Of a DNA stretch of 64,000 bases, positions 24,213 to 63,890 are shown in pieces. A program made the position numbers and the translations under genes. Origin of the DNA: Octopus sinensis (taxonomy: Eukaryota); assembly GCF_006345805.1 (NCBI RefSeq), contig NC_043014.1, forward strand, positions 47,678,001 through 47,742,000, written 5' to 3'. Numbering within the stretch: the stretch's first letter is position 1; every line of letters begins with the position of its first letter. A model generated the notes under the pieces. That model was not told where the DNA came from and did not search any database. It saw nothing but the letters and a program-made list of their open reading frames with translations.

Positions 24213-24251
<39 letters not shown>

Positions 24252-25303: not shown

Positions 25304-25338
<35 letters not shown>

Positions 25339-25548: not shown

Positions 25549-25579
<31 letters not shown>

Positions 25580-27424: not shown

Positions 27425-27512
<88 letters not shown>

Positions 27513-28204: not shown

Positions 28205-28347
28205 TGTATCTACGGCGTTCGCCGCTGGAATAAGGAGTGGTTGCAGATCACGCGGTCGTTAGCCTCAAATCGCCAGGCCTGGTTGGCATCTGTGAGAGAT
28301 GCAGCATTGAGGGTGAATGAAGCCAGCTCAACCCACGCCGGGTGAAT
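28205..28347 (+). mobile_element. 3' tip of a second RTE-like LINE family
   Basis: IYGVRRWNKEWLQITRSLASNRQAWLASVRDAALRVNEASSTHAG-stop; homologous to the end of 50614-51104. Confidence 0.7.
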
Positions 28348-29710: not shown

Positions 29711-29858
29711 ATTCAAATTGCAGCAGATTCCCAGCATTGCATCTCAATCAAGTTCCGGAGATAGTATAAACCTGTATCGTGTTGGTGATCATATTGATAT
29801 CAGCCAAGGACCCATGATATCCTCCACAGCCCATCTGGGTAGATTTTCACTTACAGCA
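29711..29858 (+). CDS. MRPL39: MRPL39 exon 7
   Basis: tttcag| ... GCA|gtatgt; FKLQQIPSIASQSSSGDSINLYRVGDHIDISQGPMISSTAHLGRFSLTA. Confidence 0.95.
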
Positions 29859-30726
29859 GTATGTTTCACTTTCTTATTATTTTTATCAAACTTTCAAACT
29901 TTTTCTTATTGAGAGAACCCTACAGTCCAAAAGTCTGTATTATGTTGAGCGACGCTGCAGTTCAGCCCCTGTCTTGTGGAGTGAACACCACTGTAAATTT
30001 CCTGTCATGTCAAAATCCTATAAGTTAGCCCCCTGACACGCTGAAGGATTCATTGGTTTAGCATCTCTCATGTTGAAACCCCTATAACAGCTTCTATCAT
30101 GTTGAAAGACCCTACAGCTCAGCCTTGCTATCTTGTTTAACAGACCATAGAATTCAACTCCTATCATCTTCAGGGACCAACATTTCAGCCCCTTGTCATT
30201 TTGAGGCACTTCACAGTTGCTGCCAGCCTCTCATTTTGAAACCATATGACAGCCACTGTCATGTCAAGATAACCTAAAATTCAGCCCCTGTTTTCATCAT
30301 CATCATCGTTTAACATCCGTTTTTCGCGCTAGCACGGGTCGGACGGTTCGACTGGGGTCTGGGAAGCCAGGAGGCTGCACCAGGCTCCAGTCTGATCTGG
30401 CAGTGTTTCTACAGCTGGATGCCCTTCCTAACGCCAACCACTCCGCGAGTGTAGTGGGTGTTTTTTACGTGCCACCGGCACAGGTGCCATGGGAGTCTGG
30501 CAGCAGCCCCGATCGTTTGGTGCTTTTAACGTGCCACCGGCACATACATATATATTGCAAGACCCTACTATTTAGTCCCTCTCATGTTGGGGAACCCCAC
30601 TGCTCAATCTCTGTTATATTGATGTTTTGTCATAGAGAAATATTTGAAGCCGGTGTACCCTAGTAGAGTACACTAACTACTACTACTACTACTACTGCTA
30701 CTACTACTACTCTTAAATACTTTCAG

Positions 30727-30801
30727 ATACATAATATTGAATGTCCTGACTATGGAAAATTACAAAGAGTACAAGGGGTAGCGATACCAAACCAGTTCTG
30801 G
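30727..30801 (+). CDS. MRPL39: MRPL39 exon 8
   Basis: tttcag| ... TGG|gtaggt; IHNIECPDYGKLQRVQGVAIPNQFW. Confidence 0.92.
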
Positions 30802-31639
30802 GTAGGTAACATGCTCTTGGTTTTCTTGTTGTTTCATTGTAGCTGTCCTCATTGACATCACCATCATCATCATCTCCATCATCATCATCATCATCCTTAA
30901 AGAAACATAATTATTGTTGACTTACATGAGTAGAGGAAGATTTCACATTGGCAGGAGTAACTGACGATACATGTGGATGAAATGAATTGTTGGTCTGTAG
31001 TTTCATAATAAGGCTAACATTGGTCAATTGTGCAAGAGAGACTGATGTTTGACTGTTGCGTTTGAGAGACTGTAGTGTTAGTCAGTAATGTACAAAGAAG
31101 TAAGCTGGCAGAAATGTTAGCACGCCGGGCGAAATGCTTAGCGGTATTTCGTCTGCTGTTACGTTCTAAGTTCAAATTCCGCCGAGGTCGACTTTGCCTT
31201 TCATCCTTCCGGGGTCGATAAATTAAGTACCAGTTACGCACTAGGGTCGATGTAATCGACTTAATACCTATGTCTGTCCTTGTTTGTCCCCTCTATGTTT
31301 AGCCCCTTGTGGGTAATAAAGAAATAAGAAACGTTAGCACGCCAGGCGAAATGCTTGGCGGTATTTCGTCTGCCACTACGTTCTGAGTTCAAATTCCGCC
31401 GAGGTCGACTTTGCCTTTCATCCTTCCGGGGTCGATAAATTAAGTACCAGTTACACACTGGGGTCGATGTAATCGACTTAATACCTATGTCTGTCCTTGT
31501 TTGTCCCCTCTATGTTTAGCCCCTTGTGGGTAATAAAGAAATAAGTAATGTACAAGCGAGTCTGTAGTGTTGGTCAGCTGCATTTGAGAAAAACAACAAT
31601 ATCCATCTGAATTCCTCTGTCTTTCTGTTTCATTGCCAG

Positions 31640-31687
31640 CTCCACCAATGGACATACAATTTATTGGAGAAACAGTCCCAGAAACTG
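31640..31687 (+). CDS. MRPL39: MRPL39 exon 9
   Basis: tgccag| ... CTG|gtaagt; LHQWTYNLLEKQSQKL, comparable to human AHFTIWDKLLERSRKM. Confidence 0.88.
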
Positions 31688-34594: not shown

Positions 34595-34687
34595 AACTGG
34601 TGTACTTACCCAAATGTACAGAAAAAGATAGAAACAGAGAAAAGCCAACCAGAACCTGTACAGCAAGAAACCCAGATGCTACCCTGA
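34595..34687 (+). CDS. MRPL39: MRPL39 exon 10 (terminal)
   Basis: Pyrimidine tract then tttcag|; NWCTYPNVQKKIETEKSQPEPVQQETQMLP-stop. Phase 0 fits exon 9 and an AATAAA follows. Little homology support for this tail. Confidence 0.75.
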   Translation, partial: NWCTYPNVQKKIETEKSQPEPVQQETQMLP

Positions 34688-34818
34688 TGCCGAGCCTTGC
34701 TACACTGTACCCAATGATATTCTTTTGTTAATCCTGAACACCCAAACTGTACAGTGGTAATCCTCCGACTCCACTCAAGATATTTCAGTTCAGTTTTGTA
34801 TTCTTTTGTAGATATTTT

Positions 34819-34824
34819 AATAAA
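34819..34824 (+). terminator. Polyadenylation signal of MRPL39
   Basis: AATAAA 132 nt after the stop codon, followed by U/GU-rich sequence (gttggtattgttttagtgtt). Confidence 0.65.
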
Positions 34825-36372
34825 TTTAATTTTGACAGTTGGTATTGTTTTAGTGTTACTGGGATGAACAATGGTCTGAGGGGTGTGTAATGTTATTGTA
34901 GTGGACAGTGGTCAGAGGATTGCGTGATGTTATTGATAAGGCGGCGAGCTAGCAGAAACATTAGCACGTCGGGCGAAATGCTTAGCGGTATTTCATCTGC
35001 CGTTACGTTGTGAGTCAAATTCCGCCGAGGTCAACTTTACCTTTCATCCTTTTGGGGTCGATAAATTAAGTACCAGTTACGCACTGGGGTCGATGTAATC
35101 GACTTAATACCTATGTCTGTCCTTGTTTGTCCCCTCTATGTTTAGCCCCTTGTGGGTAATAAAGAAATAGTTATTTGATTGGACAGTGGCTGGAGGGCTA
35201 TGTGTGGTATGTCAACAACACATAACTGGCACTCTGTCAGTTACGATGACATGGGTTCCGTTTGATCTGATCAGCAGAACAGCCTGCTCAAATAATTAAT
35301 GTGCAAGCGGTTGAGCACTCCAAAGACACACATACCCTTAACATAGTTCTCAGGGAGATTCAGCGTGAGACAGAATGTGACAGGGCTGTCCCTTTGAAAT
35401 TCATTTTTGCCAGTTGAGTGAACTGGAGCAACGTGGAATAAAGGGTCTTGCTCAAAGACACAATACGCCATTAGGAATTGAACTCATGGCCTTAGTTTTG
35501 CAAGTTGAACATCCTAACCATCAAGCCATGTGCCTTCATCAACAACACATATAGAACAACAGGCATTAGCATCAATCCCTAAGCATTTACTGACTCAAGC
35601 CCTGGAACCCTATAGGGCCGGTTTCAATGGCCTCTAAGTGGTTGAGGTCACAACACTCTGAATTGCAGTCCAATGCAGTTATTGATTTAAGTGTTTTTCT
35701 CAAGAACACGGAAAGGCATCCAGCCTGAGAAACTCTGCCAGATCAGATTGGAGTCTGGTGCAGCCATCTGGTTCGCCAAACCTCAATAAAATCGTCCAAC
35801 CCATGCTAGCATGGAAAGCAGATGTTAAACAATGATAATGATGATGATGATGACAAAATACTACCCAGTCCAGCAATTGAAACCCTGATTTTCTGATTGT
35901 GAGTGCAACTCCCTAACCTCAAGGCCATGTAGAACGGTGAGTATCTGGTATGAGGTATCTAATATTTAAATGAGTTAGCAAACACTCCTAGTACTACTGC
36001 TACTATTATTATTGTCTTCACCACTACAGCTTAATACCAACCCCACCACTTCTGTCTACTGTTAGATTAATGAAAATTTATTGATTAGTACTCATAATTG
36101 GTATCAATCTTCATAACCTGTTTATGATTTATATTATGTGTGCTTGTGTGTGTGTATATATATATATTGTGTGTGTGTATATGTATATATATATATATAT
36201 TTTATATTTCTGATGATGATGATTACATTAACTGAAATTTTTCACCATGGCAAAAATTTTCTATATATTCTATTATAGACATGATCTGCTTCATATATAC
36301 TCCATCTATCTATCCATCCGTCCACCCATTTATTCATCTATCCTAACGCATTCACCAACAACCCATGTGGAG

Positions 36373-39299: not shown

Positions 39300-39830
39300 G
39301 GTCATAGCAATGAAGCTAAAGCACACAGAGTGAAACTGCTTGGCACAGATTGACCTTGAGCTCTGTTGTGCATGTGCACTAAGTTTTAGCATTCTAGCTC
39401 ACTTCCACTGTTTACAGCAGTGCTTGGAAGGAAGGTGTGTAGCATGTGATCATCGCATTGACCATGACAGAGAAAGTTTTCATGGCAATATCTGCTCTGA
39501 GCTCTACACAAAGTTGCAGAAAGTGTATGGAGAGGAGTGTTTGAGCCGCACACAAGCGTATGTGTGGTTCAGACATTTCCAAGACGACTGGAAAAATGTC
39601 AATATTGATGAACGTTCTGGGAGACCCACAACCAGCAGACCTGAGAAAAACATGCAGCTGTGAGATGAAATTGTCAAATTTTCATCCATGAGTTATCAGA
39701 GGATGTGCAGATTAATTACTGTTCAGTTCAGTCCATTATTACTGAAAATTTGGGTATGAGACGTATGTCAACTAAGTCTGTGCCAAAACTGCTTTCACCT
39801 GACCAAAATGACACTCAGATTTCATTTACA
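39300..39830 (+). mobile_element. Mariner transposase N-terminal (HTH) relic
   Basis: LQKVYGEECLSRTQAYVWFRHFQDDWKNVNIDERSGRP, then ITENLGMRRMSTKSVPKLLSPDQ. Confidence 0.85.
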
Positions 39831-44148: not shown

Positions 44149-44165
44149 ATGCATTGTACCAAAAG
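44149..44165 (+). CDS. GGT-like putative first coding exon (MHCTK-R)
   Basis: agcATG with A at -3 and an in-frame upstream TAA (44110-44112). Strong donor AAAG|gtaagt; phase 2 joins exon 2 to give MHCTKRGKLAVLSIGVLVAMIL. Confidence 0.55.
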
Positions 44166-46829: not shown

Positions 46830-47520
46830 TACGTGTGTGTGTGTGTGTGTGTGTAAGTGTATGTAAGTGTTTGTGTAAGTGTGTGTGTGCATGTGTGTAA
46901 GTGTGTGTGTGTATAAGTGTTTGTATGTTTGTGTGTGTGTGTGTGTGTGTGTATGTGTAAGTGTATGTAAGTGTGTGTGTGTGTGTAAGTGTATGTAAGT
47001 GTTTGTGTAAGTGTGTGTGTGTAAGTGTGTGTGTGTATAAGTGTTTGTATGTTTGTGTGTGTGTGTGTGTGTGTATGTGTAAGTGTATGTAAGTGTGTGT
47101 GTGTGTGTAAGTGTATGTAAGTGTTTGTGTAAGTGTGTGTGTGCATGTGTGTAAGTGTGTGTGTGTATAAGTGTTTGTATGTTTGTGTGTGTGTGTGTGT
47201 GTAAGTATGTGTAAGTGTATGTAAGTGTTTGTGTGTGTGTAAGTGTATGTAAGTGTTTGTGTAAGTGTGTGTGTAAGTGTTTGTGTGTGTGTGTGTAAGT
47301 ATGTGTAAGTGTATGTAAGTGTTTGTGTGAGTGTGTGTAAGTGTTTGTGTGTTTGTGTAAGTATGTGTGCGTGTAAGTGTGTGTGCATAAGTGTGTGTAT
47401 AAGTGTGTGTGTATGTGTGCATAAGTGGGTGTGTGTGTAAGTGTATGTAAGTGCTTGTGTGTTTGTGTAAGTGTGTGTGTGTAAGTGTGTATAAGTGTGT
47501 GTGTGTGTAAGTGTGTTTAT
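46830..47520. repeat. Compound (GT)n/GTAA satellite with higher-order units
   Basis: Recurring blocks such as aagtgtatgtaagtgtttgtgtaagtgtgtgtg; ends about 40 nt before the GGT exon 2 acceptor. Confidence 0.92.
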
Positions 47521-47561
47521 GTATGCATACATATTTATTTATTTATTTATATGACTTACAG

Positions 47562-47732
47562 AGGAAAGTTGGCTGTACTCTCCATTGGTGTGTTGGTTGC
47601 TATGATCCTCGTCTGTTACTTCTACTTGATCCAAAAGAGCAGATTCCGCTTTGCCGTATCTGGTTCCAAATTGTTAGAATACAACCAGGCAGCAATCACA
47701 AGCGATTCATCTATGTGTTCCCAACTTGGCAT
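47562..47732 (+). CDS. GGT-like exon 2 (signal anchor plus first strand)
   Basis: ttacag| ... AT|gtaagt; GKLAVLSIGVLVAMILVCYFYLIQKSRFRFAVSGSKLLEYNQAAITSDSSMCSQLG. Confidence 0.88.
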
Positions 47733-48160: not shown

Positions 48161-48286
48161 GTCAATTCTGAGGGAGAAGAACGGAAGTACAATTGATTCT
48201 GTCATTGTCACTTTGGTTTGTATGGCACTTGACCAACCGATGTCCACAGGAATTGGAGGCAGTTTAATTATGAATATCTATGACAG
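48161..48286 (+). CDS. GGT-like exon 3
   Basis: taacag| ... AG|gtcagt; SILREKNGSTIDSVIVTLVCMALDQPMSTGIGGSLIMNIYD. Confidence 0.92.
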
Positions 48287-48878
48287 GTCAGTTCAAAATT
48301 TCCCTTACCTTTACCACAAACTAACTCCAAACCATTCTTGCTCTGTCCGAGAATATTCTCTCAGTTCATCTTCTTTTATAATAATGAAATTATTGTATAC
48401 AGTGCTCAGGTGCACCACAACTTGTCAGAAAGTGCGTATAAAGTATATGCAGTAATGTACAAATGTCTGGGAAGTGAACAGTGTATGAGTCAGATACATG
48501 CTTGCGTGTGTATGGAGGGGAGAAAATCAGGTGTAGTGTTGGCGAATTTCAGGAAGCATGGAAGTTTTGAAGGATGCAGTGCTCCGACAACTAACAACTG
48601 ATGCCGGCAGTTTGTTCCATGCTTCAGCAACTCTCAGCGTGAAAAAATGTTTCCTAAAGTCATGGGAGCTGTGCTGTTTTCTGACTTTGTAAACATGTCC
48701 ATGGGTGTTAGACGGGTGGAGTTCGAAAAGGTGCTCAGAGTTATTGTTTGTAAGATGGTTTTTTTTTTCATTTTTGTTACTATGGTTATTGTTTCTATGA
48801 TCTCATCGTTATTGCTATCATTGTCCTTACAGTCATCACTATCACCATAATTACAACCATTATCAACATCATCATCAC

Positions 48879-48913
<35 letters not shown>

Positions 48914-48914
48914 C

Positions 48915-48952
<38 letters not shown>

Positions 48953-49141
48953 CAACTACTATCATCTGCTGCAGCATCACAATCAATACTGTTATCATCA
49001 TCATCATCATCACCAACATCATCATTACCATCATCGTTAAAAAAGGACTTTGAGAAATGTCTTCTACTATGACCCCCAAGTCAACCAAAATTTTGTGGTT
49101 TGGTAGACAGAAACTGAAAGACTCCTTTTATATGTGTATAT

Positions 49142-49267: not shown

Positions 49268-49353
49268 TAAATCTCAAAAGAATGTCATCATAGATGCCTC
49301 TGGTAAATCACCACATCATGTGGCCAGCCTGAAGAATATGTCTCACCTGAAAG
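49268..49353 (+). CDS. GGT-like exon 4
   Basis: ttgcag| ... AAAG|gtaact; KSQKNVIIDASGKSPHHVASLKNMSHLK. Phases 2 in and 1 out bridge exons 3 and 5; length matches the GGT AREXAP exon. Absent from the ORF track. Confidence 0.75.
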
Positions 49354-49571
49354 GTAACTACACTACTTCCACCCGTCTACCTATCTGTGTGTCTACCTCT
49401 CTCCCACTTTCTCTCTCTTCCTCTCTCTCCCCCTCCCCATCTCTCTGTATATAGCAATCTATTTTCCCCCTCTCAAAGTGTCATGTGCATCTAGAATAAT
49501 ATAATGTTTTAAACAAAAATGGGATGGCCATGGCTGGAACACCTTTCATCATAGATCAGACATGTAATTAA

Positions 49572-49791
49572 CCCTTTTGTTACTGCATTTATTTTGAGAT
49601 GCCCTGTGTTTCTTTCAATTACTTTAAATATAACAAATACTTTAATAAAATAATTTAGTTACCATTAAGCTGGTGTTAGGAACATAAATTGTGACTAAGG
49701 TTTGGTGGAAGATTTTAATTCAAAACTTACGAAAACAAGACATTTGTACTCAGAGCCAGAGCCGGTTTCAGCCGGGTTGGTAATGAAAGGG
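49572..49791. mobile_element. Second piggyBac-like MITE family
   Basis: TTAA|CCCTTTTGTTAC ... GTAATGAAAGGG|TTAA; one end recurs at about 34500-34558. Confidence 0.7.
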
Positions 49792-49809
49792 TTAAACACT
49801 AATGCTAAC

Positions 49810-50600
49810 AACCCTAGACACTATTCTGTAACACTACTGCAATACACTATATTGTACTACCACACGACATGATCTTACAATCGCACAGCATGTCCTCACC
49901 AACACACAACATGCCCTCATCACAACACATCTTGCTTTCATTACCACAGAAAATGCCCTCATTGCAATGAGGCGAGCTGGCAGAATTGTTAGCACGCTGG
50001 GCGAAATGCTTAGCGGTGTTTCGTCTGCCGTTACTTTCTGAGTTCAAATTCTGCTGAGGTTGACTTTGCCTTTCATCCTTTCGGGGTCAATAAATTAAGC
50101 ACCAGTTACGTACTGGGGTCAATGTAGTCAACTTAATCCCTTTGTCTGTCCTTGTTTGTCCCCTCTATGTTTAGCCCCCTGTGGGTAATAAAGAAATAAG
50201 AAAATGCCTTCATCACAGTGCATCATGCTCTTACTACCACACAACATATCCTCACCACAAAACAACATACACTCACCACAAAGCACCATGTCCTCACAAC
50301 CACACAACATGATCTCATTACCATACAAGATATCCTCACTCCAGTTTAAGATACAAGATATCCTCACTCCAGTATAACATGCCCTCAATATCACATAGCA
50401 TGCTCTCTCTATGCACAACATGCTTTCACTAACATACAAGATACCCTCTACTGCAATACAACATACCCTCGGTATCACACAACATACCCTCATACACAAC
50501 ACAACTTTTCTTTACCGCCACACAACATGCCCTCACCAAAAAATAATATGCCCTCACTAACACACACCATCATGCTCTCACTACCACACGGCATGCCTTT
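49810..50600. repeat. Degenerate ~20-bp minisatellite (cacaacatgccctcac-like), interrupted by SINE A
   Basis: Repeating CACAACATG / CCCTCAC motifs. Confidence 0.8.
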
Positions 50601-50613
50601 ACAACCACCCAAA

Positions 50614-51104
50614 GTCCATCCCCTCCTCACCGTGGTGGGGACGCTGGCAATGGGTAGTGTCAGAGCTATGCCGTCGGGAACTTCGGTTCTTGGTAGGGCC
50701 ACCCAAGGCGGATTGATCTGACACCAAGTGGTATTAGGGCCACAACCTGGCAGACGGTGAAAATCCTTGGAGTGTCTGTTTCGGCAACCGGTGGCTCCTC
50801 GGTCGTTCTGTCCCTGCGTCTGCGGACAATCTACGGCAAACAGGATGTCTCTACATGCGGGATTGTTGGGGACCGCTTGTGAAATCCACATATTCCCACG
50901 AAACTTCTTCCATGAATTCTTAATGGCGAATACAATGGCAACATCGGCCTGCGCCAATGGAACCGTGACTGGCTCGCTATCTCCAGTGAACTGGCACAGG
51001 ACTGTCGTGCGTGGGCTGCCATGGTTCGAGATGCCTCGAGGGTGGTAGAAGAAGCCGACTCAACCCACCCAGGGTGAATGGCGCCACAAGTACAAGTAAG
51101 TAAG
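50614..51104 (+). mobile_element. Short RTE-like element: GC-rich 5' part joined to ORF tip and (CAAGTA)n-like tail
   Basis: Ends WNRDWLAISSELAQDCRAWAAMVRDASRVVEEADSTHPG-stop, then caagtacaagtaagtaag. Confidence 0.65.
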
Positions 51105-51592
51105 CCTAAACACAACCTGATGGTCAATATAGAGACCAAACTGTGTCATATGTCAATGCAAAGGATCTGTAAAATAGTGCCACATATTTGATTTTCCAAC
51201 TCTATTCCCCTTAACAATACCAACTGACTAGAGTGTTCCCTTAGAGCTGGCAGAATCGTTAGCACGCCGGGCGAAATGCTTAGGGGTATTTCGTCTGCGG
51301 CTTCGTTCTGAGTTCAAATTCTGCCGAGGTCGACTTTGCCTTTCATCCTTTCGGGGTCGATAAATTAAGTACCAGTTACGCACTGGGGTCGATATAATCG
51401 ACTTGATCCGTTTGTCTGTCTTTGTTTGTCCCCTCTGTGTTTAGCCCCTTGTGGGTAGTAAAGAAATAGAGTGTTCCCTTAGCAACCACAACAATACTTT
51501 CTGAATTACACAAGTCACATGACCATCTCAGCCAGAATCTCTCCCCCCTCTCAGTACACTCCTTACTCCTATGACCTTTCCAATTGATGCAG

Positions 51593-51785
51593 GTCCTTCA
51601 TCAGTGACTGTTCCTGGGCAACTGTACGGTCTATGGCAGGCACATCAGATGTATGGCTCGTTACCATGGAAACACTTGTTTGCTCCTGTGATACACCTTG
51701 CAACACAAGGTTTTAATGTCTCGCGTTTACTGGCTAATACCCTCAAAGAAATGGAGTCTGAAGTTAAGGATCAGCCCCTACTCAG
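51593..51785 (+). CDS. GGT-like exon 5
   Basis: atgcag| ... AG|gtaagt; PSSVTVPGQLYGLWQAHQMYGSLPWKHLFAPVIHLATQGFNVSRLLANTLKEMESEVKDQPLL. Confidence 0.96.
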
Positions 51786-52659
51786 GTAAGTGAAATAGAG
51801 ATCTGGTATTATTGTTTATGGGATCTTTTTGTTTCAAGGGTTTTATAGTTTTATATACAGCAGTAGGCGTAGGAGTGGCTGTGTGGTGAGTAGCTTGCTT
51901 ACCGACCACATGGTTCAGGGTTCAGTCCCACTACGTGGCACCTTGGGCAAGTGTCTTCTACTATAGTCTCGGGCCGACCAAAGCCTTGTGAGTGGATTTG
52001 GTAGACGGAAACTGAAAGAAGCCCGTCGTATATATATATATATATATGCAGCACGGATTTTTGTCAGTGAACAGGTCGCGGATTTTAGCGACGAAAATAT
52101 TTTGACAAATTAAACTTAAATGTTGAAGTGAATCGAACGGCTTTTGTGTGTTTCTTAAATGGCTTACAAACACCTTCCACGCTGCAATTGTTTTCGTTTC
52201 AGCACACGATCTCAGATCAAATCACTTGCTATGCGAGTACATCTCCCTATATATATATATACATATATATTTATGTGTGTGTGTGTGTCTGTGTTTATCC
52301 CCCCAACATCGCTTGACAACCGATGCTGGTGTGTTTATGTCCCTGTAACTTACCGTTTCGGCAAAAGAGACCGATAGAATAAGTACTAGACTTACAAAAA
52401 ATAAGTCCTGGGGTCGATTTGCTCGACTAAAGGTGGTGCTCCAGCATGGCCGCAGTCAAATGACTGAAACAAGTAAAAGAGTAAAAGAGTAAAAAGCAGT
52501 GCTGTATATAAAACTACTATATTGCTGTCATCACTCTATTATCTACGGTAGCATTGTCATCACAGTTTTGTCATCACAATATTATTATTACTACATAATC
52601 TGTATCAGTTTTGTCATCTCTACATTATCCATATCACTAGTGTCTGGGCATTATTGTCA

Positions 52660-53395
52660 GCAGTGACTGGCGCTGGACAAAGCACGTCTCTAAAATTGGC
52701 AAGAAGGCCGAAGGTGTCTTGGCATCACTCAGCAAGACCTTTGTCAGCTGCACTCCAGCTATCTTTTTAAGGCTGTATATGGCTTTGGTGTGGCCACACT
52801 TGGAATTTGCATCACCAGTCTGGAATCCCTATCTTGCTCAGGACATTGACCTCCTGGAAACTGTTCAGAGACGTGCAACCAAGTGAATACCCTCCATCAG
52901 GCACCTACCATACTCTGAACGCCTTGCTTCCCTGGGTATGGATACATTGAAGCTCCAACGTCTGGCAACTGACTTAGTAAACACCCACAAAACTATTAAC
53001 CATCACACCAACAATCACCTTCAGCATCTTTTCGAGCTCCATGTGTCTAACACATGTGGGCATGCCTACAAAGTCAGAAAAAAAGCACGGCTCCCATGAC
53101 TTTCAGAAACATTTTTTTACTACTCAAAGTTGCTGAAGCAAGGAACAAACTGCCTGCATCCGTTGTTAGTTGCCAAGACTTTGCATCCTTTAAAACCTCC
53201 ATGCTTCCTAAAATTCGCCAACACTACACCTAATATCTTCCCCTCCATACGCAGCCACACATGTATATCATGACTCATACCACTGTTCATTTTCCTGGCT
53301 TTGGTACATAATTCTACAAACTGTACATGCACCTTTGATGGGTTGTAGTGCCCCTGAGCATTATACGCAATAATTTCATCATTATTATTACATAT
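52660..53395 (+). mobile_element. CR1-like LINE 3' fragment
   Basis: YMALVWPHLEFASPVWNPYLAQDIDLLETVQRRATK..RHLPYSERLASLGMDTLKLQRL. Confidence 0.9.
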
Positions 53396-54518
53396 AGGCG
53401 CAGGAGTTGCCATGTGGTAAGTAGCTTGCTTACCAACCACATGGTTCCAGGTTTATTTCCACCGCATGGCACCTTGGGCAAGTGTCTTCTACTATAGCCT
53501 CAGGCTGACCAAAGTCTTGTGAGTGGATTTGGTAGACAGAAATTGAATGAAGCCCGTCGTATATATGTATATATATATATATATATGTGTATGTGTGTGT
53601 ATATGTTTGTGTGTCTGTGTTTGTCCCCCCAAATTCACTTGACAACCAATGCTGGTGTATTTACGTCCCCGTAACTTACCGTTTCGGCAAAAGAGACCGA
53701 TAGAATAAGTACTAGGCTTACAAAGAATAAGTCCTGGGGTCGATTTGCTCAACTAAAGGTGGTGCTCCAGCATGGCCGCAGTCAAATGACTGAAACAAGT
53801 AAAAGAGTATCTACAACAGTTTTGTCATCACCACATGATCTACAGCAATGCTGTCATCACCACATTATCTACAGCAGTGTTGTCATCAGTATATCGTCTA
53901 TACCAGCATTGTCATCTCATTATTGTCTACACCAGTTTTGTCATCATTGTATCATCTCTAGCAGTACTATCATCACTATGTAAGCTATAACATACATATC
54001 ATTGGTTTCTTTCTTTCTTTCGCCCCTTTCAAGCCTAGCCAGGCTCATGGGCCCAGTTTCCCGGTTTCTGTGGCATATGTGTTCCCCCCAGCTGGATGGG
54101 ACTCCAGTCCATCGCAGTGTTACTCAAGAAACAGGAAGAGAGAATGAGAGAAAGTTGTGGCGAAAGAGACAACAGGGGTCACCACCACTCCCTGCTGGAG
54201 CCTTGGGGAGCTTTTAGGTGTTTTCTCTCAATAAACACACACAACGGCCGGTCTGGGAATCGAAACTGCGATCCTCCAACTGTGAGTCCGCTGCCCTAAC
54301 CACTGGGCCATTGCGCCTCCACACATATCATTGGTTTATTAGCTTTAATCATTATATAATCCCTATATAATCAGTAAACAATGATACCCTAATTATATTA
54401 GCTAATATTTTCATCTTAACAGCTTATATGCATTCATAATATCACCTGATATTTGATATTATTGATAGTAGTGTTGAAGATATGAGTAATATCTGTTACA
54501 TTGATTTTGTCCAATCAG

Positions 54519-54688
54519 AGAGCTGTATGTAAATGAGGCAACAAGACATGTTTATCAAGAAGGAGACCTCATGAAACACCCAAGACTAGCAAAATCACTG
54601 AAGATAATCTCTGAGGAAGGATTTCTTGCTGTCTATAATGGCTCCTTGTCTAATGCCATTGTTGAAGATCTGAGAGATGCTGGTGAAG
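54519..54688 (+). CDS. GGT-like exon 6
   Basis: aatcag| ... GAAG|gtgagt; ELYVNEATRHVYQEGDLMKHPRLAKSLKIISEEGFLAVYNGSLSNAIVEDLRDAGE. An alternative same-phase donor lies at 54682. Confidence 0.93.
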
Positions 54689-56154
54689 GTGAGTTCAAGT
54701 TCTGGTTTGTCTACATTACTTTTATCATCATCATCATCATCATCGTTTAACGTCTGTTCTCCATGCTAGCATGGGTTGGACAGTTCGACCGGGGATCTGG
54801 GAAGCCAGAAGGCTGCACCAGGCTCCAGTTTGATCTGGCAGTGTTTCTACAGCGGGATGCCCTTCCTAACGCCAACCACTCCGTGAGTGTAGTGGGTGCT
54901 TTTTTACGTGCCACCTGCACAGGTGCCAGGCGAGGCTGGCAACGGCCGGTGCTGCATAAAACCACTCAGCATACTCTGCAAAGTGGTTGGCGTCAGGAAG
55001 GGCATCCAGGTGTAAAAACTATGCCAAACCAAACTGGAGGCTGGTGCAGCTCCCTAACTTTCCAGCTCTGGTCAAACCATCCAAGCCATGCCATCATGGA
55101 CAACAGACATTAAATGATTATGATGGTAATTCTCAACCATTTTTTACCTATGGACCCCTTTGATTATTATTTTATTCTGGTGGACCCTTATAGCCATTCG
55201 ATGTTTAACCCTTTAGTGTTTAAACCGGCCATATCAGGCCAAAATTGTCTTCCTGTTTTATGCTCAAACCAGCCAGTTCTGACCTCTCCCACCTACCCTA
55301 CAAAATCATTCTAAAAATAAACAGGGACGTCATCAAAATCTCAGAGTTACAAGATGCTATACAATTAATTTAAAAGAATGTGATTAAACAGGCTTTACAT
55401 TTGACAGAGTAATCATCATCATCATCATCATCGTTTAACGTCCGTTTTCCGCACTAGCACGGGTTGGACGGTTCGACCGGGGTCTGGGAAGCCAGGGGCT
55501 GCACCAGGCTCCAGTCTGATCTGGCAGAGTTTCTACAGCTGGATGCCCTTCCTAATGCCAACCACTCCGCGAGTGTAGTGAGTGCTTTTTACGTGCCACC
55601 TGCACAGGTGCCAGGGTGGTCCGGCATCGGCCGCAATCGGTTGGAGCTCTTAACGTGCCACCGTTCGGATGGTGCTTTTTATGTGCCACTAATCTGAATG
55701 CTAAAGGGTTAAAAACTAATTTTATAGATACTACTTTCAAAATTCTTATGTTGCTATTCACTCATTCACTTGTATAGGCTGAACGACGTAAAATGTTAGA
55801 GAAAGAAAGATACTTGTTTCTTGCTATACGTATAAACCAAAGCTTTTCATGTACCCTTAACCCTTTAGCATTTAGACTGTCTGTATCAGACCCAAATATT
55901 CTACATATTTTTGGTTCAAACTGGTCAGATCTAGCCTTTCGCACCTACCCAACAGTGTTATTCTAGAAATATACAATCACTTCATCGAAATCTCAAAGCT
56001 ATGAGATAATACTTGATTAATTCAAAGCAATGTGAATAAATAAGCATTACAGGTTCTTCTTATATAGCACACTTTTTGCATTTAATTCTAAGTTGACTTT
56101 GTGCGTAATTTAAATTTTGCAATATATCCATTTTAGTTTCTGGTAACTTATAAA

Positions 56155-56552
56155 TCTTTATATATAAAAGTGAGGTTGTGTGCTGTCTGTCTCCTACGAT
56201 TTAGATTCCTAACTCCTCCCACATTTTGCGGTGCAGTTTAACCAAAACCGGGTATCTTATAGTCGTGATTCACATCGAGCCCTTCTGGGTATTAGCGCGC
56301 ATCTACGATGAGTCTACGATTTAAAAAATAATTTACCATGAATTTATCCCATTTTTAATGCATTTTTGGCATATATAAGGGAAGTAACTCTCTAAAAATT
56401 TATTATTAAATCTCAGAACGTAAAAAGCTACAGTAACACCCCCCTCCTTTGTGGTTAGCCATATTGAGATGGCTATTATACTTTACATCTCTAAAAATGC
56501 TTATATAGTTATTTCCCTTACAAACCCGAGCAACGCCGGGCGACACTGCTAG
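56155..56552 (+). mobile_element. Non-autonomous Helitron, short variant with distinct internal segment
   Basis: A|TC at 56155, hairpin, CTAG|T at 56549-56552. Confidence 0.9.
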
Positions 56553-57119
56553 TATATTATATTACAACATCATATTCCTTTCTACTACAAGCACAAGGCT
56601 TGAAATTTTAGGGGAGGTGGCTATCCAATTACATTGACCCCAGTGCTTGACTGACACTTAGTTCATCGACCCCAAAAGGATGAAAGCAAAGTTAACCGTA
56701 GCAGAATTTGAACTCAGAACATAAAGATGGACAAAATGCTACTGAGCATTTTGCCTGGAATGCTAACGATTTTGCCAGCTGGCCACACCTTTGTATAACA
56801 ATACCATATTAACAAAATCTGTGACAATATATTCACATGGACCAGTCTTTCGTCACTCCTTATTGAAACTCGATCCGTGAGGGAAGTATGAATCACTACA
56901 CACACTCCTCAAATGTTTTTTTTTGTTTTTTTTCATTATTTCCAAGTTACATATATATAATTATCATCATCATCATCATCATCATTACTACTTGTAGCTC
57001 ATGCAGTTCACTGAAGTACAAATGTTAACAAATACACACACACACACACACACATATATGTGTGTCTATACATAGACACACACACACACACACACACATA
57101 TATGTGTGTCTATACATAG

Positions 57120-57152
<33 letters not shown>

Positions 57153-57368
57153 CTCTTACTCGTTTACTTGTTTCAGTCATTTGACTGCGGCCATGCTGGT
57201 GCACTGCCTTTAGTCAAGCAAATCGACCCCGGGACTTATTCTTTGTAAGCCCAGCACTTATTCTATCGGTCTCTTTTGCCGAACCGCTAAGTGACAGGGA
57301 CATAAACACACCAGCATCGGTTGTCAAGCAATGCTAAGGGGACAAACACAGACACACAAACACACACA

Positions 57369-57410
<42 letters not shown>

Positions 57411-57925
57411 TACATCGGGCTTCTTTCAGTTTCCGTCTACCAAATCCACTCACAAGGCTTTGGTCGGCCCGAGGCTATAGTAGAAGACACTTGCCCAAAG
57501 TGCCACGCAGTGGGACTGAACCCGGAACCATGTGGTTGGTAAGCAAGCTACTTACCACACAGCCACTCCTACGCCTACATATATGTGTGTCTATACATAG
57601 ATACACACACACACACATATATATATGTATGTATGTGTGTGTCTATACATAGATACACACACACATATATATAGATATATGTATGTGTGTATGTGTTAGT
57701 ATGTGCTCATGCATACACACACACACACACTCACACACGCATGCACACACACACACAGAGGACTTTTTTCATCTTCTCTCTACCAAATCCCCTCGTGACA
57801 ATTTGGTCAGCCCAGGGCTATAGTAGAAGACCCTTACTCAAGGCCCCAGTTGACAAAAACAAAATCGATTTATGTTTCATAAAGAAACCATTGATGTTGT
57901 TATTCTTGTTGCCCTTATTTTTCAG

Positions 57926-58075
57926 GATCTCTTATGTCCTTGAGTGACCTCACCTCTTATAATGTAAAGTTTCCAGCCCCATTAAGGACAAGACTGTCCA
58001 ACGGTGACCAAGTGATGGCAACCCCACCTCCATCGAGTGGCCCAATAGTGCAACTGATACTCAATGTTCTTGACC
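57926..58075 (+). CDS. GGT-like exon 7
   Basis: tttcag| ... GACC|gtaaga; SLMSLSDLTSYNVKFPAPLRTRLSNGDQVMATPPPSSGPIVQLILNVLD. Confidence 0.95.
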
Positions 58076-58084
58076 GTAAGACCT

Positions 58085-58975
58085 TTAACTTGTCACTTGT
58101 CACCTGTCATCTGGTCATAGTTACCTTGCCTGTGTCACTTGTCATCTTGTCATCAGTCATTTGTTATCTTTTCCTTAGTCGTTTGTCATCAATCTCTGTC
58201 ATCTTTCACCTATCATCTAGTCATATGTCACCTACCATATACCACCTGTCACCTCATCACCTGTCACCTCATCATCTGTCATCTAGTCATATGTTGCCTG
58301 TTACTTGTCACCTGTCACCTCATCATCTGTCATCTAGTCATATGTTACCTGTCACTTGTCACCTGTCATCTTGTCATTTGTCACCTGTCACCTTGTCAGC
58401 TCTCACCTACCATCTAGCCATATATCATCTGTCATCATGTCATTTGTCACCTGTCACCTTGTCATCTTTCACCTACCATCTAGCCATATATCATCTGTCA
58501 TCTTGTCATTTGTCACCTGTCACCATGTCAACTCTCACCTACCATCTAGCCATATATGAGCTGTCATCTTGTCATTTGTCACCTGTCACCCTGCCAACTC
58601 TCACCTACCATCTAGCCATATATCATCTGTCATCTTGTCGTTTGTCACCTGTCACCTCTCACCTACCATCTAGCTATATATCATCTGTCATCTTGTCATT
58701 TATCACCTGTCATCTTGTCACCTTTTACCTACCATCTAGTCATATATCACTTGTCACCTTGTCAGCTCTTATCTACCATCTAGCCATATATCACTTGTCA
58801 CCTTGTCAATTCTCACCTACCATCTAGCTATATATCATCTGTCATTTGTCACCTGTCACCTTTCACCTACCATCTAGCCATATATCATATGTCACCTTGT
58901 CATCTGTCACTTTGTCATCTATTACCTGTCTTCTTTTCATCAGTCATCTTGTCGTCAGTAACTTGTCACCATCTC
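58085..58975. repeat. 66-bp higher-order minisatellite built from TGTCA(C/T) submotifs
   Basis: tcacctac recurs at 58403, 58469, 58535 and 58601. Confidence 0.92.
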
Positions 58976-60156
58976 TCTCTATCTCTCTCTCTCTCTCTCC
59001 CTATTGCACCACACTAGAGAGTTCTACTCTCTTTCATTGTCCCATTGTGAAATACTCAACACAAAAGCAGTGGAGCATCTAAGTATAATTCTCAGTGCTG
59101 TGGTACCTTAAGTGCAACATCTCTACTTGTACCACCACCTTTGTTACTGATGCCGTTGTTTAAACTCCCTTTCTATGTGAACATTTCAAACTAACAGCCT
59201 TCATATAAGAACAGAACGTCAAGAAAACACCTGTTAAGCACACACTACTCCCACTACCCTCTCTCTCCCTCCCTCTCTATTTCCCTCCCTCTCTCCCTCT
59301 CTCTATCCCTCCATCCTCTCTCTCTCCCCCTCCCCTCTCTCTACTAAATATTCTAGCCGTTTGCCAGCCTGCTCTGGCCCCTGTGCCAGTGGCACGTAAA
59401 AAGCACCCGCTACACTCACGGAGTGGTTGGTATTAGGAAGGGCATCCAGCTGTAGAAACACTGCCAGATCAGACCTGAGCCCGGTGCAGCCTCCTGGCTT
59501 CTCAGACCCCGGTCAAACCGTCCAACCCATGCTAGCAGGGAAAACAGACGTTAAACGATGATGATGATGATGATAAAAGAAAGGGCAAGTATGCTGCTAT
59601 GTCACAACATTCGGAGTGGCTATGTGGTAAGTAGCTTGCTAACCAACCACATGGTTCCGGGTTCAGTCCCACTGCGTGGCATCTTGGGCAAGTGTCTTCT
59701 GCTATAGCCCCGGGCCGACCAATGCCTTGTGAGTGGATTTGGTAGATGGAAACTGAAAGAAGCCTGTCGTATATATGTATATATATATGTGTGTGTGTGT
59801 CTGTGTGTCTGAGTTTGTCCCCTTAGCATTGCTTGACAACCGATGCTGGTGTGTTTACGTCCCCGTCACTTAGCGGCTTGGCAAAATGGACCGATAGAAT
59901 AAGTACTGGGCTTACAAAGAATAAGTTCCGGGGTCGATTTGCTCGACTAAAGGCGGTGCTCCAGCATGGCCGCAGTCAAATGACTGAAACTAGTAAAAGA
60001 GTAAAAGAGTATCTCCGTTAACACCGCTTCCCCTTCTACTTCACCATACACCCACCACACCCCACATCACCACCACCACCACCACCATCACCATCACCCA
60101 CTAAGTACCTGTAATATCTTAACTCCTACGATACTACTCTATCTCTGATGCTTCAG

Positions 60157-60296
60157 TGTATGAGTTCAAGCCCAACTACCGCACCAACCTCAACATGTTC
60201 GCCACTACGCTACACAGGATCATCGAAACATTCAAGTTTGCGTACGGCATCCGATCCCGACTGGAGGAGCCCGGCTTTGATGAAGACGTCACACAG
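60157..60296 (+). CDS. GGT-like exon 8
   Basis: cttcag| ... CAG|gtgagt; YEFKPNYRTNLNMFATTLHRIIETFKFAYGIRSRLEEPGFDEDVTQ. Confidence 0.95.
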
Positions 60297-60384
60297 GTGA
60301 GTAACAGGTGCGAGGGATTGTTGACGGTGTAACAGAAGTGGGTGGTTGTCGATGGTGCAACACACCTGAGTGACTGTTGAGAAT

Positions 60385-60720
60385 GATGTGGGGCTGGTGG
60401 TGGTAGTGGTGGTGGTAATGGTGGTGGTGGTGGTAATGGTGGTAATTGTGGTGGTGGTGTTGGTGGTGGTGGTAGTGTTGGTGGTGGTGGTGATGGGATG
60501 ATGTTGATGGTGGTAATGATGGTGGTGGTGGTGGTGGTGGTGGTGGCAGCCGTAGTGGCGGCGGTGATGCTGGTGGTGGTGGTGGTGGCAGCCGTAGTGG
60601 CGGCGGTGATGCTGGTGGTGGTGGTGGTGGCAGCCGTAGTGGCGGCGGTGATGCTGGTGGTGGTGGTGAGGATGAAGATGGTAGTGGTTGTGATGATGAT
60701 GATGATGCGGGTGATGGTTG
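60385..60720. repeat. (GTG)n tract with repeated gcagccgtagtggcggcggtgatgctg unit
   Basis: Three copies of the unit are visible. A similar (GTG)n/GATT compound tract lies at 43800-43980. Confidence 0.9.
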
Positions 60721-61260
60721 TGATGTCCGCTTTCCATGCTAGCATGGGTTGGACGATTTGACTGAGGTCTGGCGAACCAGATGGCTGCACCAGGCTCCAA
60801 TCTTGATCTGGCAGAGTTTCTACAGCTGGATGCCTTTCCTAATGCCAACCACTCCGAGAGTGTAGTGGGTGCTTTTATGTGCCACTGGCACGAGGGCCAG
60901 TCAGGCGGTACTGGCAACGGCCACGCTCATGGTGATTTTTATGTGCCACCTGTACAATGTTTTTTTCATGTGCCACCAGCACAAGTGCCAGTAAGGCAAC
61001 GCAGGTAATGATCACACTCGAATGGTGCTTTTACATGCCACCAGCACAGAAGCCAGTTTGTTGCTCTGGCAACGATCACGCTCGGATGGTACTCTTAGTG
61101 CTCCACTAGCATGGATGCCAGTCATCGAATTTGATTTCAATTTCGATTCGATGATGATGATGGTAATGACAACACCACTGCCTCAATACATGAATTCTGT
61201 CATCCACAGCAAATTCTGGTATAATCTGATGTTCGTTTATTTTTCATTCTTATTTTAAAG

Positions 61261-61448
61261 TTCCTTGTCAATTTAACATCAACAGAGTGGGCCACCGGGA
61301 TTAAATCACAGATCGATGACCATAGCACATATGAGAGTGGATATTATAACCCTGGCACCCTCAATGAGGAAGGTTTAGGGACCACCCATCTGAATTGCAT
61401 CGGCTTGGATGGTATTGCTGTATCAGTGACTAGCTCACTCAACCATAG
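61261..61448 (+). CDS. GGT-like exon 9, autocleavage site and catalytic Thr
   Basis: ttaaag| ... AG|gtatgt; FLVNLTSTEWATGIKSQIDDHSTYESGYYNPGTLNEEGLG|TTHLNCIGLDGIAVSVTSSLNH. The nucleophile codon ACC is at 61381-61383. Confidence 0.96.
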
Positions 61449-61494
61449 GTATGTGATTTACAGTTTTATTTGACAGACACACATACACATACAT

Positions 61495-61533
<39 letters not shown>

Positions 61534-62054
61534 CACATATAAATAAAGGAACACAGATGAGGTTTAAAATTTACAAGAGCTTTTGCAGTAGAATTCTATT
61601 GATGTATTTTATTACATTACACCATGACATAGAATCCACCATCTTCAGGTAAAATTCTAAACAGGTATCAAACAGGTGAGACAATACCTTGATCAGGATG
61701 AATCCAATCAGCATTGTTAGATATATATATGTGTGTGTGTATGGATGTAGTTGCCAGCCTCGCCCCCGTGCCGGTGGCATGTAAAAGCACCATCCGTTCG
61801 TGTCCGTTGCCAGCCTCGCCTGGCCCCCGTTCGTGGCCGTTTGCCAGCTCCATCTAGCACCTGTGCGGGTGGCATGTAAAAAGCACCCACTACACTCATG
61901 GAGTGGTTGGCGTTAGGAAGGGCATCCAGCCGTAGAAACACTGCCAGATCAGACTGGGCCTGATGCAGCCTTCTGGCTTCACAGACCCCAGTTGAACCGT
62001 CCAACCCATGCCAGCATGGAAAACGGACGCTAAATGATGATGATGATGATGATA

Positions 62055-62085
<31 letters not shown>

Positions 62086-62390
62086 ATATATTATATATAT
62101 ATATATATATATACATATGTATATACTTATATATATATACATATGTATATACTTATATATATAATATATATATATATTATATTATATATATATATATATA
62201 TATATAGATATATATATATACATATGTATATACTGTATATATATATACATATGTATATACTTATATATATATACATATGTATATACTTATATATATATAT
62301 ACATATGTATATACTGATATATATATATATACATATGTATATACTGATATATATATATATACATATGTATATACTTAATATATATATAAC

Positions 62391-62421
<31 letters not shown>

Positions 62422-62740
62422 ATATATATATATTACATATGTATATACTTATATATATATATACACACATATATATATATATATATAACATATGTATATA
62501 CTTATATATATATATTATACACACATATATATATATATACATATGTATATACTTATATATATTACTTCACATATATAGATATATATATATATATACATGT
62601 GTATATACTTATATATATATAATACACACACATATTATATATATATATCTATATACATATGTATATACTTATATATATATATATTCACATATATATATAT
62701 ATATATATATACATGTGTATATACTTATATATATATATAT

Positions 62741-62782
<42 letters not shown>

Positions 62783-63014
62783 GTAATATACTTAATATAT
62801 ATATATATACATATGTATATACTTATATATATATACACACACATAATATATATATTATATACATATGTAATACTTATATATATATACACACACATATATA
62901 TATATATTATATCTATATATATATACATATGTATACTTATAATATATACACACACACACACATATATATTATATATATATATATATTATACATATGTATA
63001 TCTTATATATATAT

Positions 63015-63067
<53 letters not shown>

Positions 63068-63292
63068 TGTATATATATATATATGTATATACAATATATA
63101 ATACACCCACACACACATATATATATATATATACATATGTGCATACATATATATAAATACATATGTGTATACATATATATATATATATACATATGTGTAT
63201 ACATATATATATATACATATGTGTATACATATATATATATACATATGTGTATACATATATATTTATATACATATATACATTATATATATATA

Positions 63293-63323
<31 letters not shown>

Positions 63324-63345
63324 ACATATATATACATATATACAT

Positions 63346-63406
<61 letters not shown>

Positions 63407-63500
63407 ATATATATATATATATATATAACACTCACACGTGTGTATATGTATATATGCATAATATTTGTGTGTGTATATATATATATACACACACACACAT
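62055..63500. repeat. Large compound (TA)n/(CA)n/(TG)n microsatellite field
   Basis: Seen directly; similar fields at 2240-2560, 25240-25620, 43215-43560 and 57035-57760. Confidence 0.97.
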
Positions 63501-63646
63501 ACTCATCATATAAAAACCAATACTACTACTACTACTACACACAATCAGAAACACACTACAGGTAGCAAATATATTCACAGCAGCATCACCAGCAATACCA
63601 ACTATAGGGCTTACCCGTATCACATGCAAACTGCCTTGTCTTTTAG

Positions 63647-63890
63647 GTTTGGTGCCCAGATTTTGGGACGAAGGACTGGAATCTTGTTTAACAATGGAAT
63701 GGCAGCGTTCTCAACACCAAGCAGACACAATCGCAGTGCCTCAATAAACCAACCTCTCCCTAATTTGATCGGGGCCAACAAGTCTCCTATGTCCTATGTG
63801 TCACCAATTATTATGACAGACAACACAGGCAACACCAAACTGGTTATTGGAGCCTCTGGAGGAACTAAAATTATTTCTTCTCTCTCCTAT
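63647..63890 (+). CDS. GGT-like exon 10 (last exon in window)
   Basis: ttttag| ... TAT|gtaagt; FGAQILGRRTGILFNNGMAAFSTPSRHNRSASINQPLPNLIGANKSPMSYVSPIIMTDNTGNTKLVIGASGGTKIISSLSY. Confidence 0.96.

Follow-up and report, generated by a model that had tools for sequence, protein, structure and literature searches.

Gamma-glutamyl transpeptidase (GGT), a textbook enzyme, has glutamate-binding residues that are nearly invariant from bacteria to humans. In human GGT1, R107, S451, S452 and N401 form hydrogen bonds to the glutamate of the donor and E420 forms a salt bridge to its alpha-amino group. Donor positioning is described as being based on a salt bridge between D423 and R107 and on contacts with the alpha-amino and alpha-carboxylate groups. 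G473 and G474 stabilise the tetrahedral intermediate, and K562 and Y403 make up the acceptor site (PMC6949936, PMC12663528). Here, we analyzed a GGT-like gene of Octopus sinensis, which lies on the + strand of a 64,000-nt stretch of DNA (contig NC_043014.1, positions 47,678,001 to 47,742,000 of the forward strand; hereafter the window, to which coordinates refer unless stated otherwise). The gene is the octopod orthologue of a cephalopod GGT1/5-type ectoenzyme that is canonical in decapodiforms, and by fold and catalytic core its product belongs to the GGT family (PF01019/MEROPS T03). Judged by its residues, it would not qualify as a functional GGT1/GGT5-type glutathione hydrolase (EC 3.4.19.13 / 2.3.2.2). 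A preliminary description of the locus, made from the sequence alone, had already pointed to an altered substrate pocket, and the roles that it ascribed to the human GGT1 residues agree with the two papers cited above.

The octopus protein has the same fold as human GGT1 (structures 4GDX, 4GG2 and 4Z9O) at about 36–38% identity, and the two have in common the type II membrane anchor, the cysteines C50 and C74, the cleavage motif G|T-x-H, N401, S451 and G473/G474. Unlike the human enzyme, the octopus protein carries R107S, E108G, E420G, D422A, D423A, S452Y and K562S, and it lacks the human C192–C196 pair, which is also absent in Sepia. The decapodiform GGT shares the N-terminal anchor and the C-terminal ...PAGF with the octopod proteins but, in contrast to them, is fully canonical (ARETAP, GTAH, NNEMDDF, PMSSM, GSGG and R at position 562) and evolves about half as fast.

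Several members of the GGT fold have other or no assigned substrates. Human GGT2, GGT6 and GGT7 are without established substrate or activity; they are separate vertebrate paralogues and not orthologues of the octopod gene. The cephalosporin acylase of Bacillus halodurans (2NLZ) and LmbA (6J3A) have the same N-terminal nucleophile (Ntn) hydrolase fold and a Thr nucleophile (Foldseek template modelling (TM) scores of 0.77–0.86) and show that the GGT scaffold can accept other acyl groups, whereby these bacterial proteins, with 16–22% identity, are not specifically related to the octopus protein and present a functional analogy only. HpxW, which was cited in the preliminary description, is a further bacterial GGT-fold amidohydrolase with a non-glutathione substrate. 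The venom GGTs of arthropods (centipede "scoloptoxin SSD14" and the venom gamma-GT of parasitoid wasps) are of the GGT1 type and have been recruited to new biology. Microplitis proteins are the best non-cephalopod matches of the octopus protein and show E420G and D422N, but keep R107, D423 and S451/S452 (RTSNGNDSSGG). The name "scoloptoxin SSD14-like" on arthropod matches is a pipeline label, and the proteins that bear it keep the pocket. A literature search yielded no publication on a cephalopod GGT-like protein, in line with the preliminary description, which knew of no described cephalopod case. Thus far, the gene is known as an annotation, and the loss of the pocket, its timing and the loss of the nucleophile in Argonauta appear to be undescribed.

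The Octopus Gene Encodes an Intact Protein of the GGT Family

Between 44 and 64 kb of the window, ten GGT-like pieces occur on the + strand among stop-free segments of eukaryotic, intron-rich DNA. The spliced frame was rebuilt from the window as ten exons of the + strand with AG at the acceptors and GT at the donors throughout, which join to 495 codons without a stop. This frame is 100% identical to residues 1–495 of O. sinensis XP_036366893.1 (P0121), a protein of 580 aa that an automatic pipeline annotated as "glutathione hydrolase 1 proenzyme-like isoform X1". The "uninterrupted 495-codon frame" of the preliminary description is thus open as claimed, but it is a spliced concatenation that starts at 44149 and not at 49268, where exon 4 begins, and it is cut by the end of the window. 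The final 85 codons (two coding exons, including the position of K562) are located downstream of the window; their O. vulgaris counterparts are found 3.0 and 3.9 kb past the end of the exon that corresponds to 63647–63890.

The protein matches Pfam family PF01019 with E=5e-115 and 386 bits, where the cut-off is 27, and a chance match is therefore far from likely. Structure prediction with AlphaFold2 was carried out for the full-length O. vulgaris orthologue, which is 98% identical to the O. sinensis protein. The model has a mean pLDDT (predicted local distance difference test) of 93 and a pTM (predicted TM score) of 0.92, is poorly defined only at the loop 441–450, and contains an N-terminal helix at residues 5–31 that fits a membrane anchor. 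The best Foldseek matches are all GGTs (probability 1.00), including bacterial GGT precursors; against human GGT1, the heavy chain yielded a TM score of 0.93–0.94 at a root-mean-square deviation of 1.3–1.4 Å and the light chain a TM score of 0.90. Family profile, fold and open frame thus bear out the earlier view of an intact gene for a GGT-family Ntn hydrolase.

Donor-Binding Residues Are Replaced and Catalytic Residues Are Kept

Residue equivalences were taken from HMMER alignments to the heavy and light chains of human GGT1 (4GDX, 4GG2), and human GGT1 numbering is used throughout. Exon 4 (49268–49353) encodes DASGKSP in place of NAREVAP, with Ser (TCT, 49299–49301) at the position of R107 and Gly (49302–49304) at that of E108. 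In exon 10 (63647–63890), from which the gene runs on past the window, the motif NNGMAAF contains Gly for E420 (GGA, 63696–63698) and Ala for both D422 and D423 (GCA GCG, 63702–63707), and the motif PMSYV keeps S451 but has Tyr for S452 (TAT, 63795–63797). The position of K562, whose codon lies past the window, is occupied by Ser in Octopus and by Ala in Argonauta. Of the alpha-carboxylate set R107/S451/S452, only S451 is left, and of the alpha-amino set N401/E420/D423, only N401; the D423–R107 salt bridge is gone.

On the catalytic side, the protein retains T381, H383, N401, S451 and G473/G474 and has Ser in place of T399. Exon 9 (61261–61448) carries the predicted autocleavage site G|TTH within GLG|TTH, whereby the nucleophile Thr (ACC, 61381–61383) is aligned with the first residue of the human light chain (T381), as well as TSSLN, which has Ser for T399 and keeps N401. 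The oxyanion residues G473/G474 are encoded by GGA GGA (63858–63863) in the ASGG motif of exon 10 (63852–63863; GASGGT at 63849–63866). If a pseudoenzyme is defined by the loss of a residue of the chemical step, the Octopus protein is not one; its losses are confined to substrate-binding residues. The codons singled out in the preliminary description (61381, 49299–49301, 63696, 63702–63707 and 63795) are all exactly placed, and its three altered motifs, ASGKSP, NNGMAAF and PMSYV, recur in the spliced frame and in the alignments. It was also right in describing the catalytic machinery as retained and the gamma-glutamyl pocket as devoid of its charges, and the losses extend further, to E108, D422 and K562.

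For a residue census, 236 GGT homologues with a length of 450 aa or more were aligned, which come from animals, plants, protists and bacteria. Position 107 is R in 226/236 sequences, D423 is D in 229/236 and S452 is S in 228/236, and S451 (S in 234/236) and T381 (T in 235/236) are even more uniform. E420 is naturally variable and is V, G or Q in 51/236. Among the non-cephalopod homologues, E108 is E in 218/226, and position 562 is K or R in 178/226. Within the 236 homologues, a joint loss of R107, D423 and S452 occurs in the octopod proteins only; P0068, a 799-aa Joint Genome Institute protein, has a partly similar pattern (TTSNGDANSGG). When 1.84 billion representatives were searched exhaustively with HMMER, the matches listed past the octopod cluster were ordinary GGTs with at most 40% identity, and the eight best ones inspected are canonical at D423 and S451/S452.

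The preliminary description had named a different true exon 4 with an AREXAP motif as a possible source of error. A regex scan in the three + frames found no AREXAP-like peptide between exons 3 and 5, and tblastn of the whole window with canonical GGTs of Sepia, Ostrea and Lineus found no other GGT sequence in the introns. An alternative exon 4 with AREXAP was rejected on the grounds that neither scan yielded one. The same exon 4, in which Ser or Thr takes the place of R107, is also used by O. vulgaris, O. bimaculoides and Argonauta hians in their annotated genes. RNA editing was rejected as a means of restoring the canonical residues, since A-to-G changes cannot turn TCT, GGA, GCA, GCG and TAT into codons for Arg, Glu, Asp or Ser. 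No region near the pocket motif stands out by unusual conservation of synonymous sites, which would hint at editing or RNA structure.

The Pocket Changed on the Octopod Stem

The nearest non-octopod relatives are the cuttlefish cluster P0004, to which Acanthosepion/Sepia pharaonis CAE1255820.1 belongs, and a second decapodiform cluster (P0132/P0384) represented solely in Logan transcript assemblies, with 46–48% identity. In a neighbour-joining tree of 52 GGTs, Octopus, Argonauta and two decapodiforms form a clade in 200/200 bootstraps, in which the octopods have a long stem, and the octopod protein nests inside metazoan GGT1/5. The gene order TGS-domain gene/GGT-like gene/Dor1 (COG8) is the same in O. 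vulgaris, O. bimaculoides and Argonauta, and no tandem GGT was found within 10 kb of the gene in these three species. The 12-exon structure with its exon boundaries and canonical splice sites is conserved in four octopod species. The possibility that the gene is a side paralogue was rejected on the basis of the clade with the decapodiform GGT and the conserved neighbourhood among octopods.

Octopus and Argonauta share G, A, A and Y at positions 420, 422, 423 and 452, whereas Sepia and a second decapodiform are canonical there. Octopus and Argonauta have exactly the same NNGMAAF motif, with one synonymous difference in its DNA, at an overall protein identity of 54–62%. Because the closest relatives are canonical decapodiform GGTs and because both octopod genera share these four residues, the change of the pocket is placed on the octopod stem, before the split of Octopus and Argonauta.

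The Argonauta Orthologue Has Lost the Nucleophile

In Argonauta, the nucleophile region reads GGG GCA ACC CAC (G-A-T-H) as opposed to GGG ACC ACC CAT (G-T-T-H) in Octopus, and the oxyanion region reads GCC ACT GCT GGT as opposed to GCC TCT GGA GGA, so that the first Gly (G473) is Ala. Both changes are genomic codons of the Argonauta sequence L003, namely T381A (GCA) at 18908–18910 and G473A (GCT) at 19696–19698. Here, residues of the chemical step itself are lost, and the Argonauta protein falls under the definition of a pseudoenzyme given above. According to a recent review, the nucleophile Thr is conserved in all known GGTs. Restoration of the Thr by A-to-I editing was rejected, as GCA cannot become a Thr codon. 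Further near-invariant residues (G62, G293, R337 and I489) are altered in Argonauta, and the gene is otherwise intact. The loss of the nucleophile in a gene that is kept suggests that the function conserved in the clade may not need catalysis.

The deposited A. hians model GAB1603247.1 omits exon 3, which is intact at L003 13013–13129. A loss of the GIGG exon in Argonauta was therefore rejected, as this exon has AG/GT splice sites. At L003 13209–14419, the 3' half of exon 3 with its donor (…MALDQPMSTGVGASLIMNIYD|gttagt) forms a tandem array of about ten copies with a period of about 150 nt, and a diverged copy of the repeated fragment is located at L003 14912–14974.

Purifying Selection and Accelerated Change

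The ratio of nonsynonymous to synonymous divergence (dN/dS) was calculated by the Nei–Gojobori method on codons from genomic exons. It amounts to 0.19 for O. vulgaris versus O. bimaculoides (dS 0.15), 0.22 for O. sinensis versus O. bimaculoides (dS 0.15) and 0.20 for O. sinensis versus O. vulgaris (dS 0.04); for Octopus versus Argonauta, it is about 0.17 at a saturated dS of about 1.5. The synonymous excess is highly significant for O. vulgaris/O. bimaculoides (Fisher p=2e-14) and for O. sinensis/O. vulgaris (p=4e-4). Ratios of about 0.2 together with this excess refute a decaying duplicate, which the preliminary description had proposed to check by dN/dS.

A relative-rate test yielded 95 unique changes in Octopus versus 44 in Sepia (p=1.5e-5), and with gastropod or bivalve outgroups 81–101 versus 43–48 (p from 4e-3 to 2e-6). 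Out of 114 highly conserved columns, Octopus differs at 25, and the two decapodiforms at 8 and 7, respectively (25 versus 8: Fisher p=0.002). In these sequence comparisons, the octopod lineage evolved about twice as fast as the decapodiform one. Between the two octopod genera, 46 unique changes in Argonauta stand against 30 in Octopus (p=0.07).

Possible Functions of the Octopod Protein

We propose the following course of events. The ancestral protein would have been a type II membrane-anchored Ntn hydrolase ectoenzyme with the GGT fold. After its lineage had separated from cuttlefish and squid, but before Octopus and Argonauta diverged, it lost the donor-binding residues R107, E108, E420, D422, D423 and S452 as well as K562 of the acceptor site, and purifying selection has acted since. 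The Octopus protein would be a membrane-anchored, probably glycosylated ectoprotein, whose precursor probably cuts itself at Gly391|Thr392 into a heavy and a light chain, because the cleavage-site Thr, N401, S451 and the Gly–Gly oxyanion hole remain. Binding of the gamma-glutamyl donor and of the carboxylate of Cys-Gly or another acceptor would be lost, and the protein would act neither as a glutathione hydrolase nor as a transpeptidase. In sum, we think it more likely than not that a former GGT has been retained for a role without gamma-glutamyl chemistry, and the database name "glutathione hydrolase 1 proenzyme-like" probably misstates what the octopod proteins do.

What this role could be depends on how the two octopod genera are read together. 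Since the gene was retained in the sister lineage despite the loss of the nucleophile, we lean slightly towards a role without catalysis, for example in binding or as a scaffold at the cell surface, which we regard as having a little less than an even chance; the Thr of Octopus would then be retained for self-processing or by inertia. It could also be, with a smaller but still substantial chance, that the Octopus protein is an amidase of new specificity, which cleaves itself and then uses its Thr and oxyanion hole on an uncharged or more hydrophobic acyl-amide, in a pocket remodelled by E420G, D422A, D423A, R107S and S452Y. Such an enzyme would be in keeping with the catalytic set (G|T-x-H, T399S, N401, S451 and GG), which is kept in three Octopus species, with the identity of NNGMAAF across otherwise much diverged octopod proteins, by which the new state itself would be constrained, and with the presence of the other-substrate enzymes 2NLZ and LmbA among the structural matches. 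On the other hand, no candidate substrate is known, Argonauta keeps the gene despite having lost the nucleophile and one oxyanion Gly, and the fact that Octopus still has its catalytic residues is statistically indistinguishable from chance: at the 22% rate of change in conserved columns, all six of six would be kept with a likelihood of about 22%. If the Octopus protein were newly enzymatic, the Argonauta copy would be on its way out, whereby the excess of unique changes in Argonauta is compatible with either reading of that copy. The preliminary description had left the choice between a self-cleaving enzyme for a hydrophobic acyl-amide and a non-enzymatic protein; both alternatives stand, but in view of T381A and G473A in Argonauta, a new substrate is not favored over a non-catalytic role.

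Two further explanations appear far less probable. A weakly working gamma-glutamyl transpeptidase, in which K118, N412 and S463 of the octopus protein take over the binding, would draw on the retained N401 and S451, on the variability of E420 among active GGTs and on the basic residue found two positions past the lost R107 (K in Octopus, R in Argonauta). This residue was rejected as an octopod-specific replacement, as K or R occurs there in about 20% of ordinary GGTs. In human GGT1, most of the activity disappears in site-directed mutants of R107, D423 and S451/S452. Since the three near-invariant residues R107, D423 and S452 are lost jointly in octopods alone, and since the salt bridge and the alpha-amino and alpha-carboxylate contacts underlie donor positioning, we hold such residual activity to be very unlikely. 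Of about the same low standing is an incipient pseudogene, which would be annotated because its frame is still open. The faster octopod lineage, the annotated isoform X2 that deletes a core helix, the absence of the Octopus protein from Logan transcript contigs, and the lost catalytic residues and tandemly duplicated exon fragment of Argonauta would all suit decay. They are opposed by open 12-exon frames with canonical splice sites in four species, by the low dN/dS with a strong synonymous excess even among close Octopus species, and by the age of the pocket changes, which are common to Argonauta and which the frame has survived.

A number of observations weigh against a role without gamma-glutamyl chemistry or without catalysis. 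The loss of GGT activity is deduced from mutagenesis and structures of other GGTs. The K/R two positions past R107 might partly stand in for the lost arginine. T381, H383, N401, S451, G473 and G474 have been kept in Octopus since the split from Argonauta, which fits continued catalysis on a new substrate, although statistically this is not decisive. The state of Argonauta comes from one assembly with additional changes at invariant sites and a rearranged exon 3 region, and that copy may be dying. Finally, no Logan transcript assembly carries the Octopus protein (cluster P0001), for which there are only NCBI chromosome records, and expression in octopus may be low or restricted. The Sepia orthologue (P0004) occurs on many Logan assembly contigs (17, 70, 7 etc.). 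As for the venom and secreted GGTs, the feature weighed for this class was the N-terminal hydrophobic anchor helix, which is kept in the octopus protein, and a link to venom is unsupported by the data.

Here, an animal lineage has exchanged the glutamate-binding set of an apparently orthologous GGT1/5 gene, with the gene still under selection. The cephalopods present a natural series, with a canonical protein in Sepia, a lost pocket and a kept nucleophile in Octopus, and a nucleophile lost as well in Argonauta, which allows one to ask what a GGT scaffold can do when it no longer recognises gamma-glutamyl groups. The interest of the finding is a specialist one, and it opens no new field.

Search for a Canonical GGT in Octopods

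No other cephalopod GGT was present among the best 120–150 matches listed for word-index queries with the Octopus, Sepia and Patella proteins, nor among the matches listed in the exhaustive search of representatives; such searches cannot prove absence, and the word index even missed the Octopus protein with the Sepia query. No cephalopod GGT was recognised among ten orphan representatives, which came from arthropods, one nematode and one myxozoan, apart from two unnamed Logan proteins. In the window, tblastn found no second GGT copy within positions 1–44,000 or on the minus strand. The label "GGT1_5" was rejected as a sign of five Sepia paralogues, since Mytilus proteins bear the same label; presumably, it is the generic name of an orthology group (KEGG "GGT1_5, CD224") and not a paralogue number. 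It is conceivable, though we consider it unlikely, that octopods have no canonical GGT1/5-type glutathione hydrolase at all and that their sole orthologue was converted in the octopod ancestor into a protein unable to bind gamma-glutamyl substrates, and in Argonauta into a protein that lacks the nucleophile. The lack of a canonical paralogue would raise a concrete question on glutathione turnover in octopuses, in which the processing of extracellular glutathione, mercapturates and cysteinyl-leukotrienes would run differently.

Remaining Exons, Repeats and Neighbouring Sequences

The remaining coding exons, all on the + strand, are as follows. Exon 1 (44149–44165) encodes MHCTK plus two bases of an Arg codon and ends at the donor gtaagt; it is the sole match to ATGCAYTGYACNAA in the window and is collinear with the annotated start in O. 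vulgaris and O. bimaculoides. Exon 2 (47562–47732) encodes the type II membrane anchor (KLAVLSIGVLVAMILVCYFYL) and MCSQ at 47713, with the first Cys of the pair (human C50), and exon 3 (48161–48286) encodes LVCM at 48213 (human C74) and GIGGS, which is the conserved GIGGG with its final Gly changed to Ser. Exon 5 (51593–51785; GPSSVTVPGQLYGLW...) is the best-conserved stretch between Octopus and Argonauta. It is followed by exon 6 (54519–54688), exon 7 (57926–58075; PPPSSGPIVQLILNVLD) and exon 8 (60157–60296). The latter is skipped in the annotated isoform X2 (XP_036366894.1, 525 aa), which uses an internal acceptor in exon 9 (…caacag|AGTGG; 61261–61287) and lacks 55 residues, including the conserved core helix HRIxEAFKFAY; it is unlikely to exist as a folded protein. 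The open reading frame at 57934–58827 (297 aa) is spurious, as it represents exon 7 reading through into an intronic minisatellite (57934–58910), a TGTCACC-rich repeat of 44/66 nt directly after exon 7.

Further simple repeats lie around the exons. An AT/TATACA-type tract of 1.3 kb (62055–63370; GC content about 21%) is located just upstream of exon 10, a TG/TAAG tract (46836–47524) stops about 40 bp before exon 2, and (CAT)n and (TGG)n tracts occur in introns, with microsatellites at 48858–49035 and 60395–60668. Several families of repeats similar to short interspersed elements, 130–300 nt in length, are present between 30000 and 64000 in both orientations with 75–94% identity between copies, and they sit in introns as well as upstream of the gene; examples are 31093–31548, 49965–50203, 51235–51473, 52248–52483, 53574–53809, 57148–57541 and 59604–60012. 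The region from about 22700 to 36200 is collinear with the O. bimaculoides sequence that bears the 3' part of the upstream neighbour, which encodes a protein of about 350 aa with a weak TGS-domain match; the downstream Dor1/COG8 gene is outside the window. At 39334–39660 (+), a 109-aa open segment shows a weak match to the HTH domain of Mos1/mariner transposases (Pfam HTH_48; E=8e-5 and 23.1 bits, just below the cut-off of 24.1) and is probably an intergenic transposon remnant.

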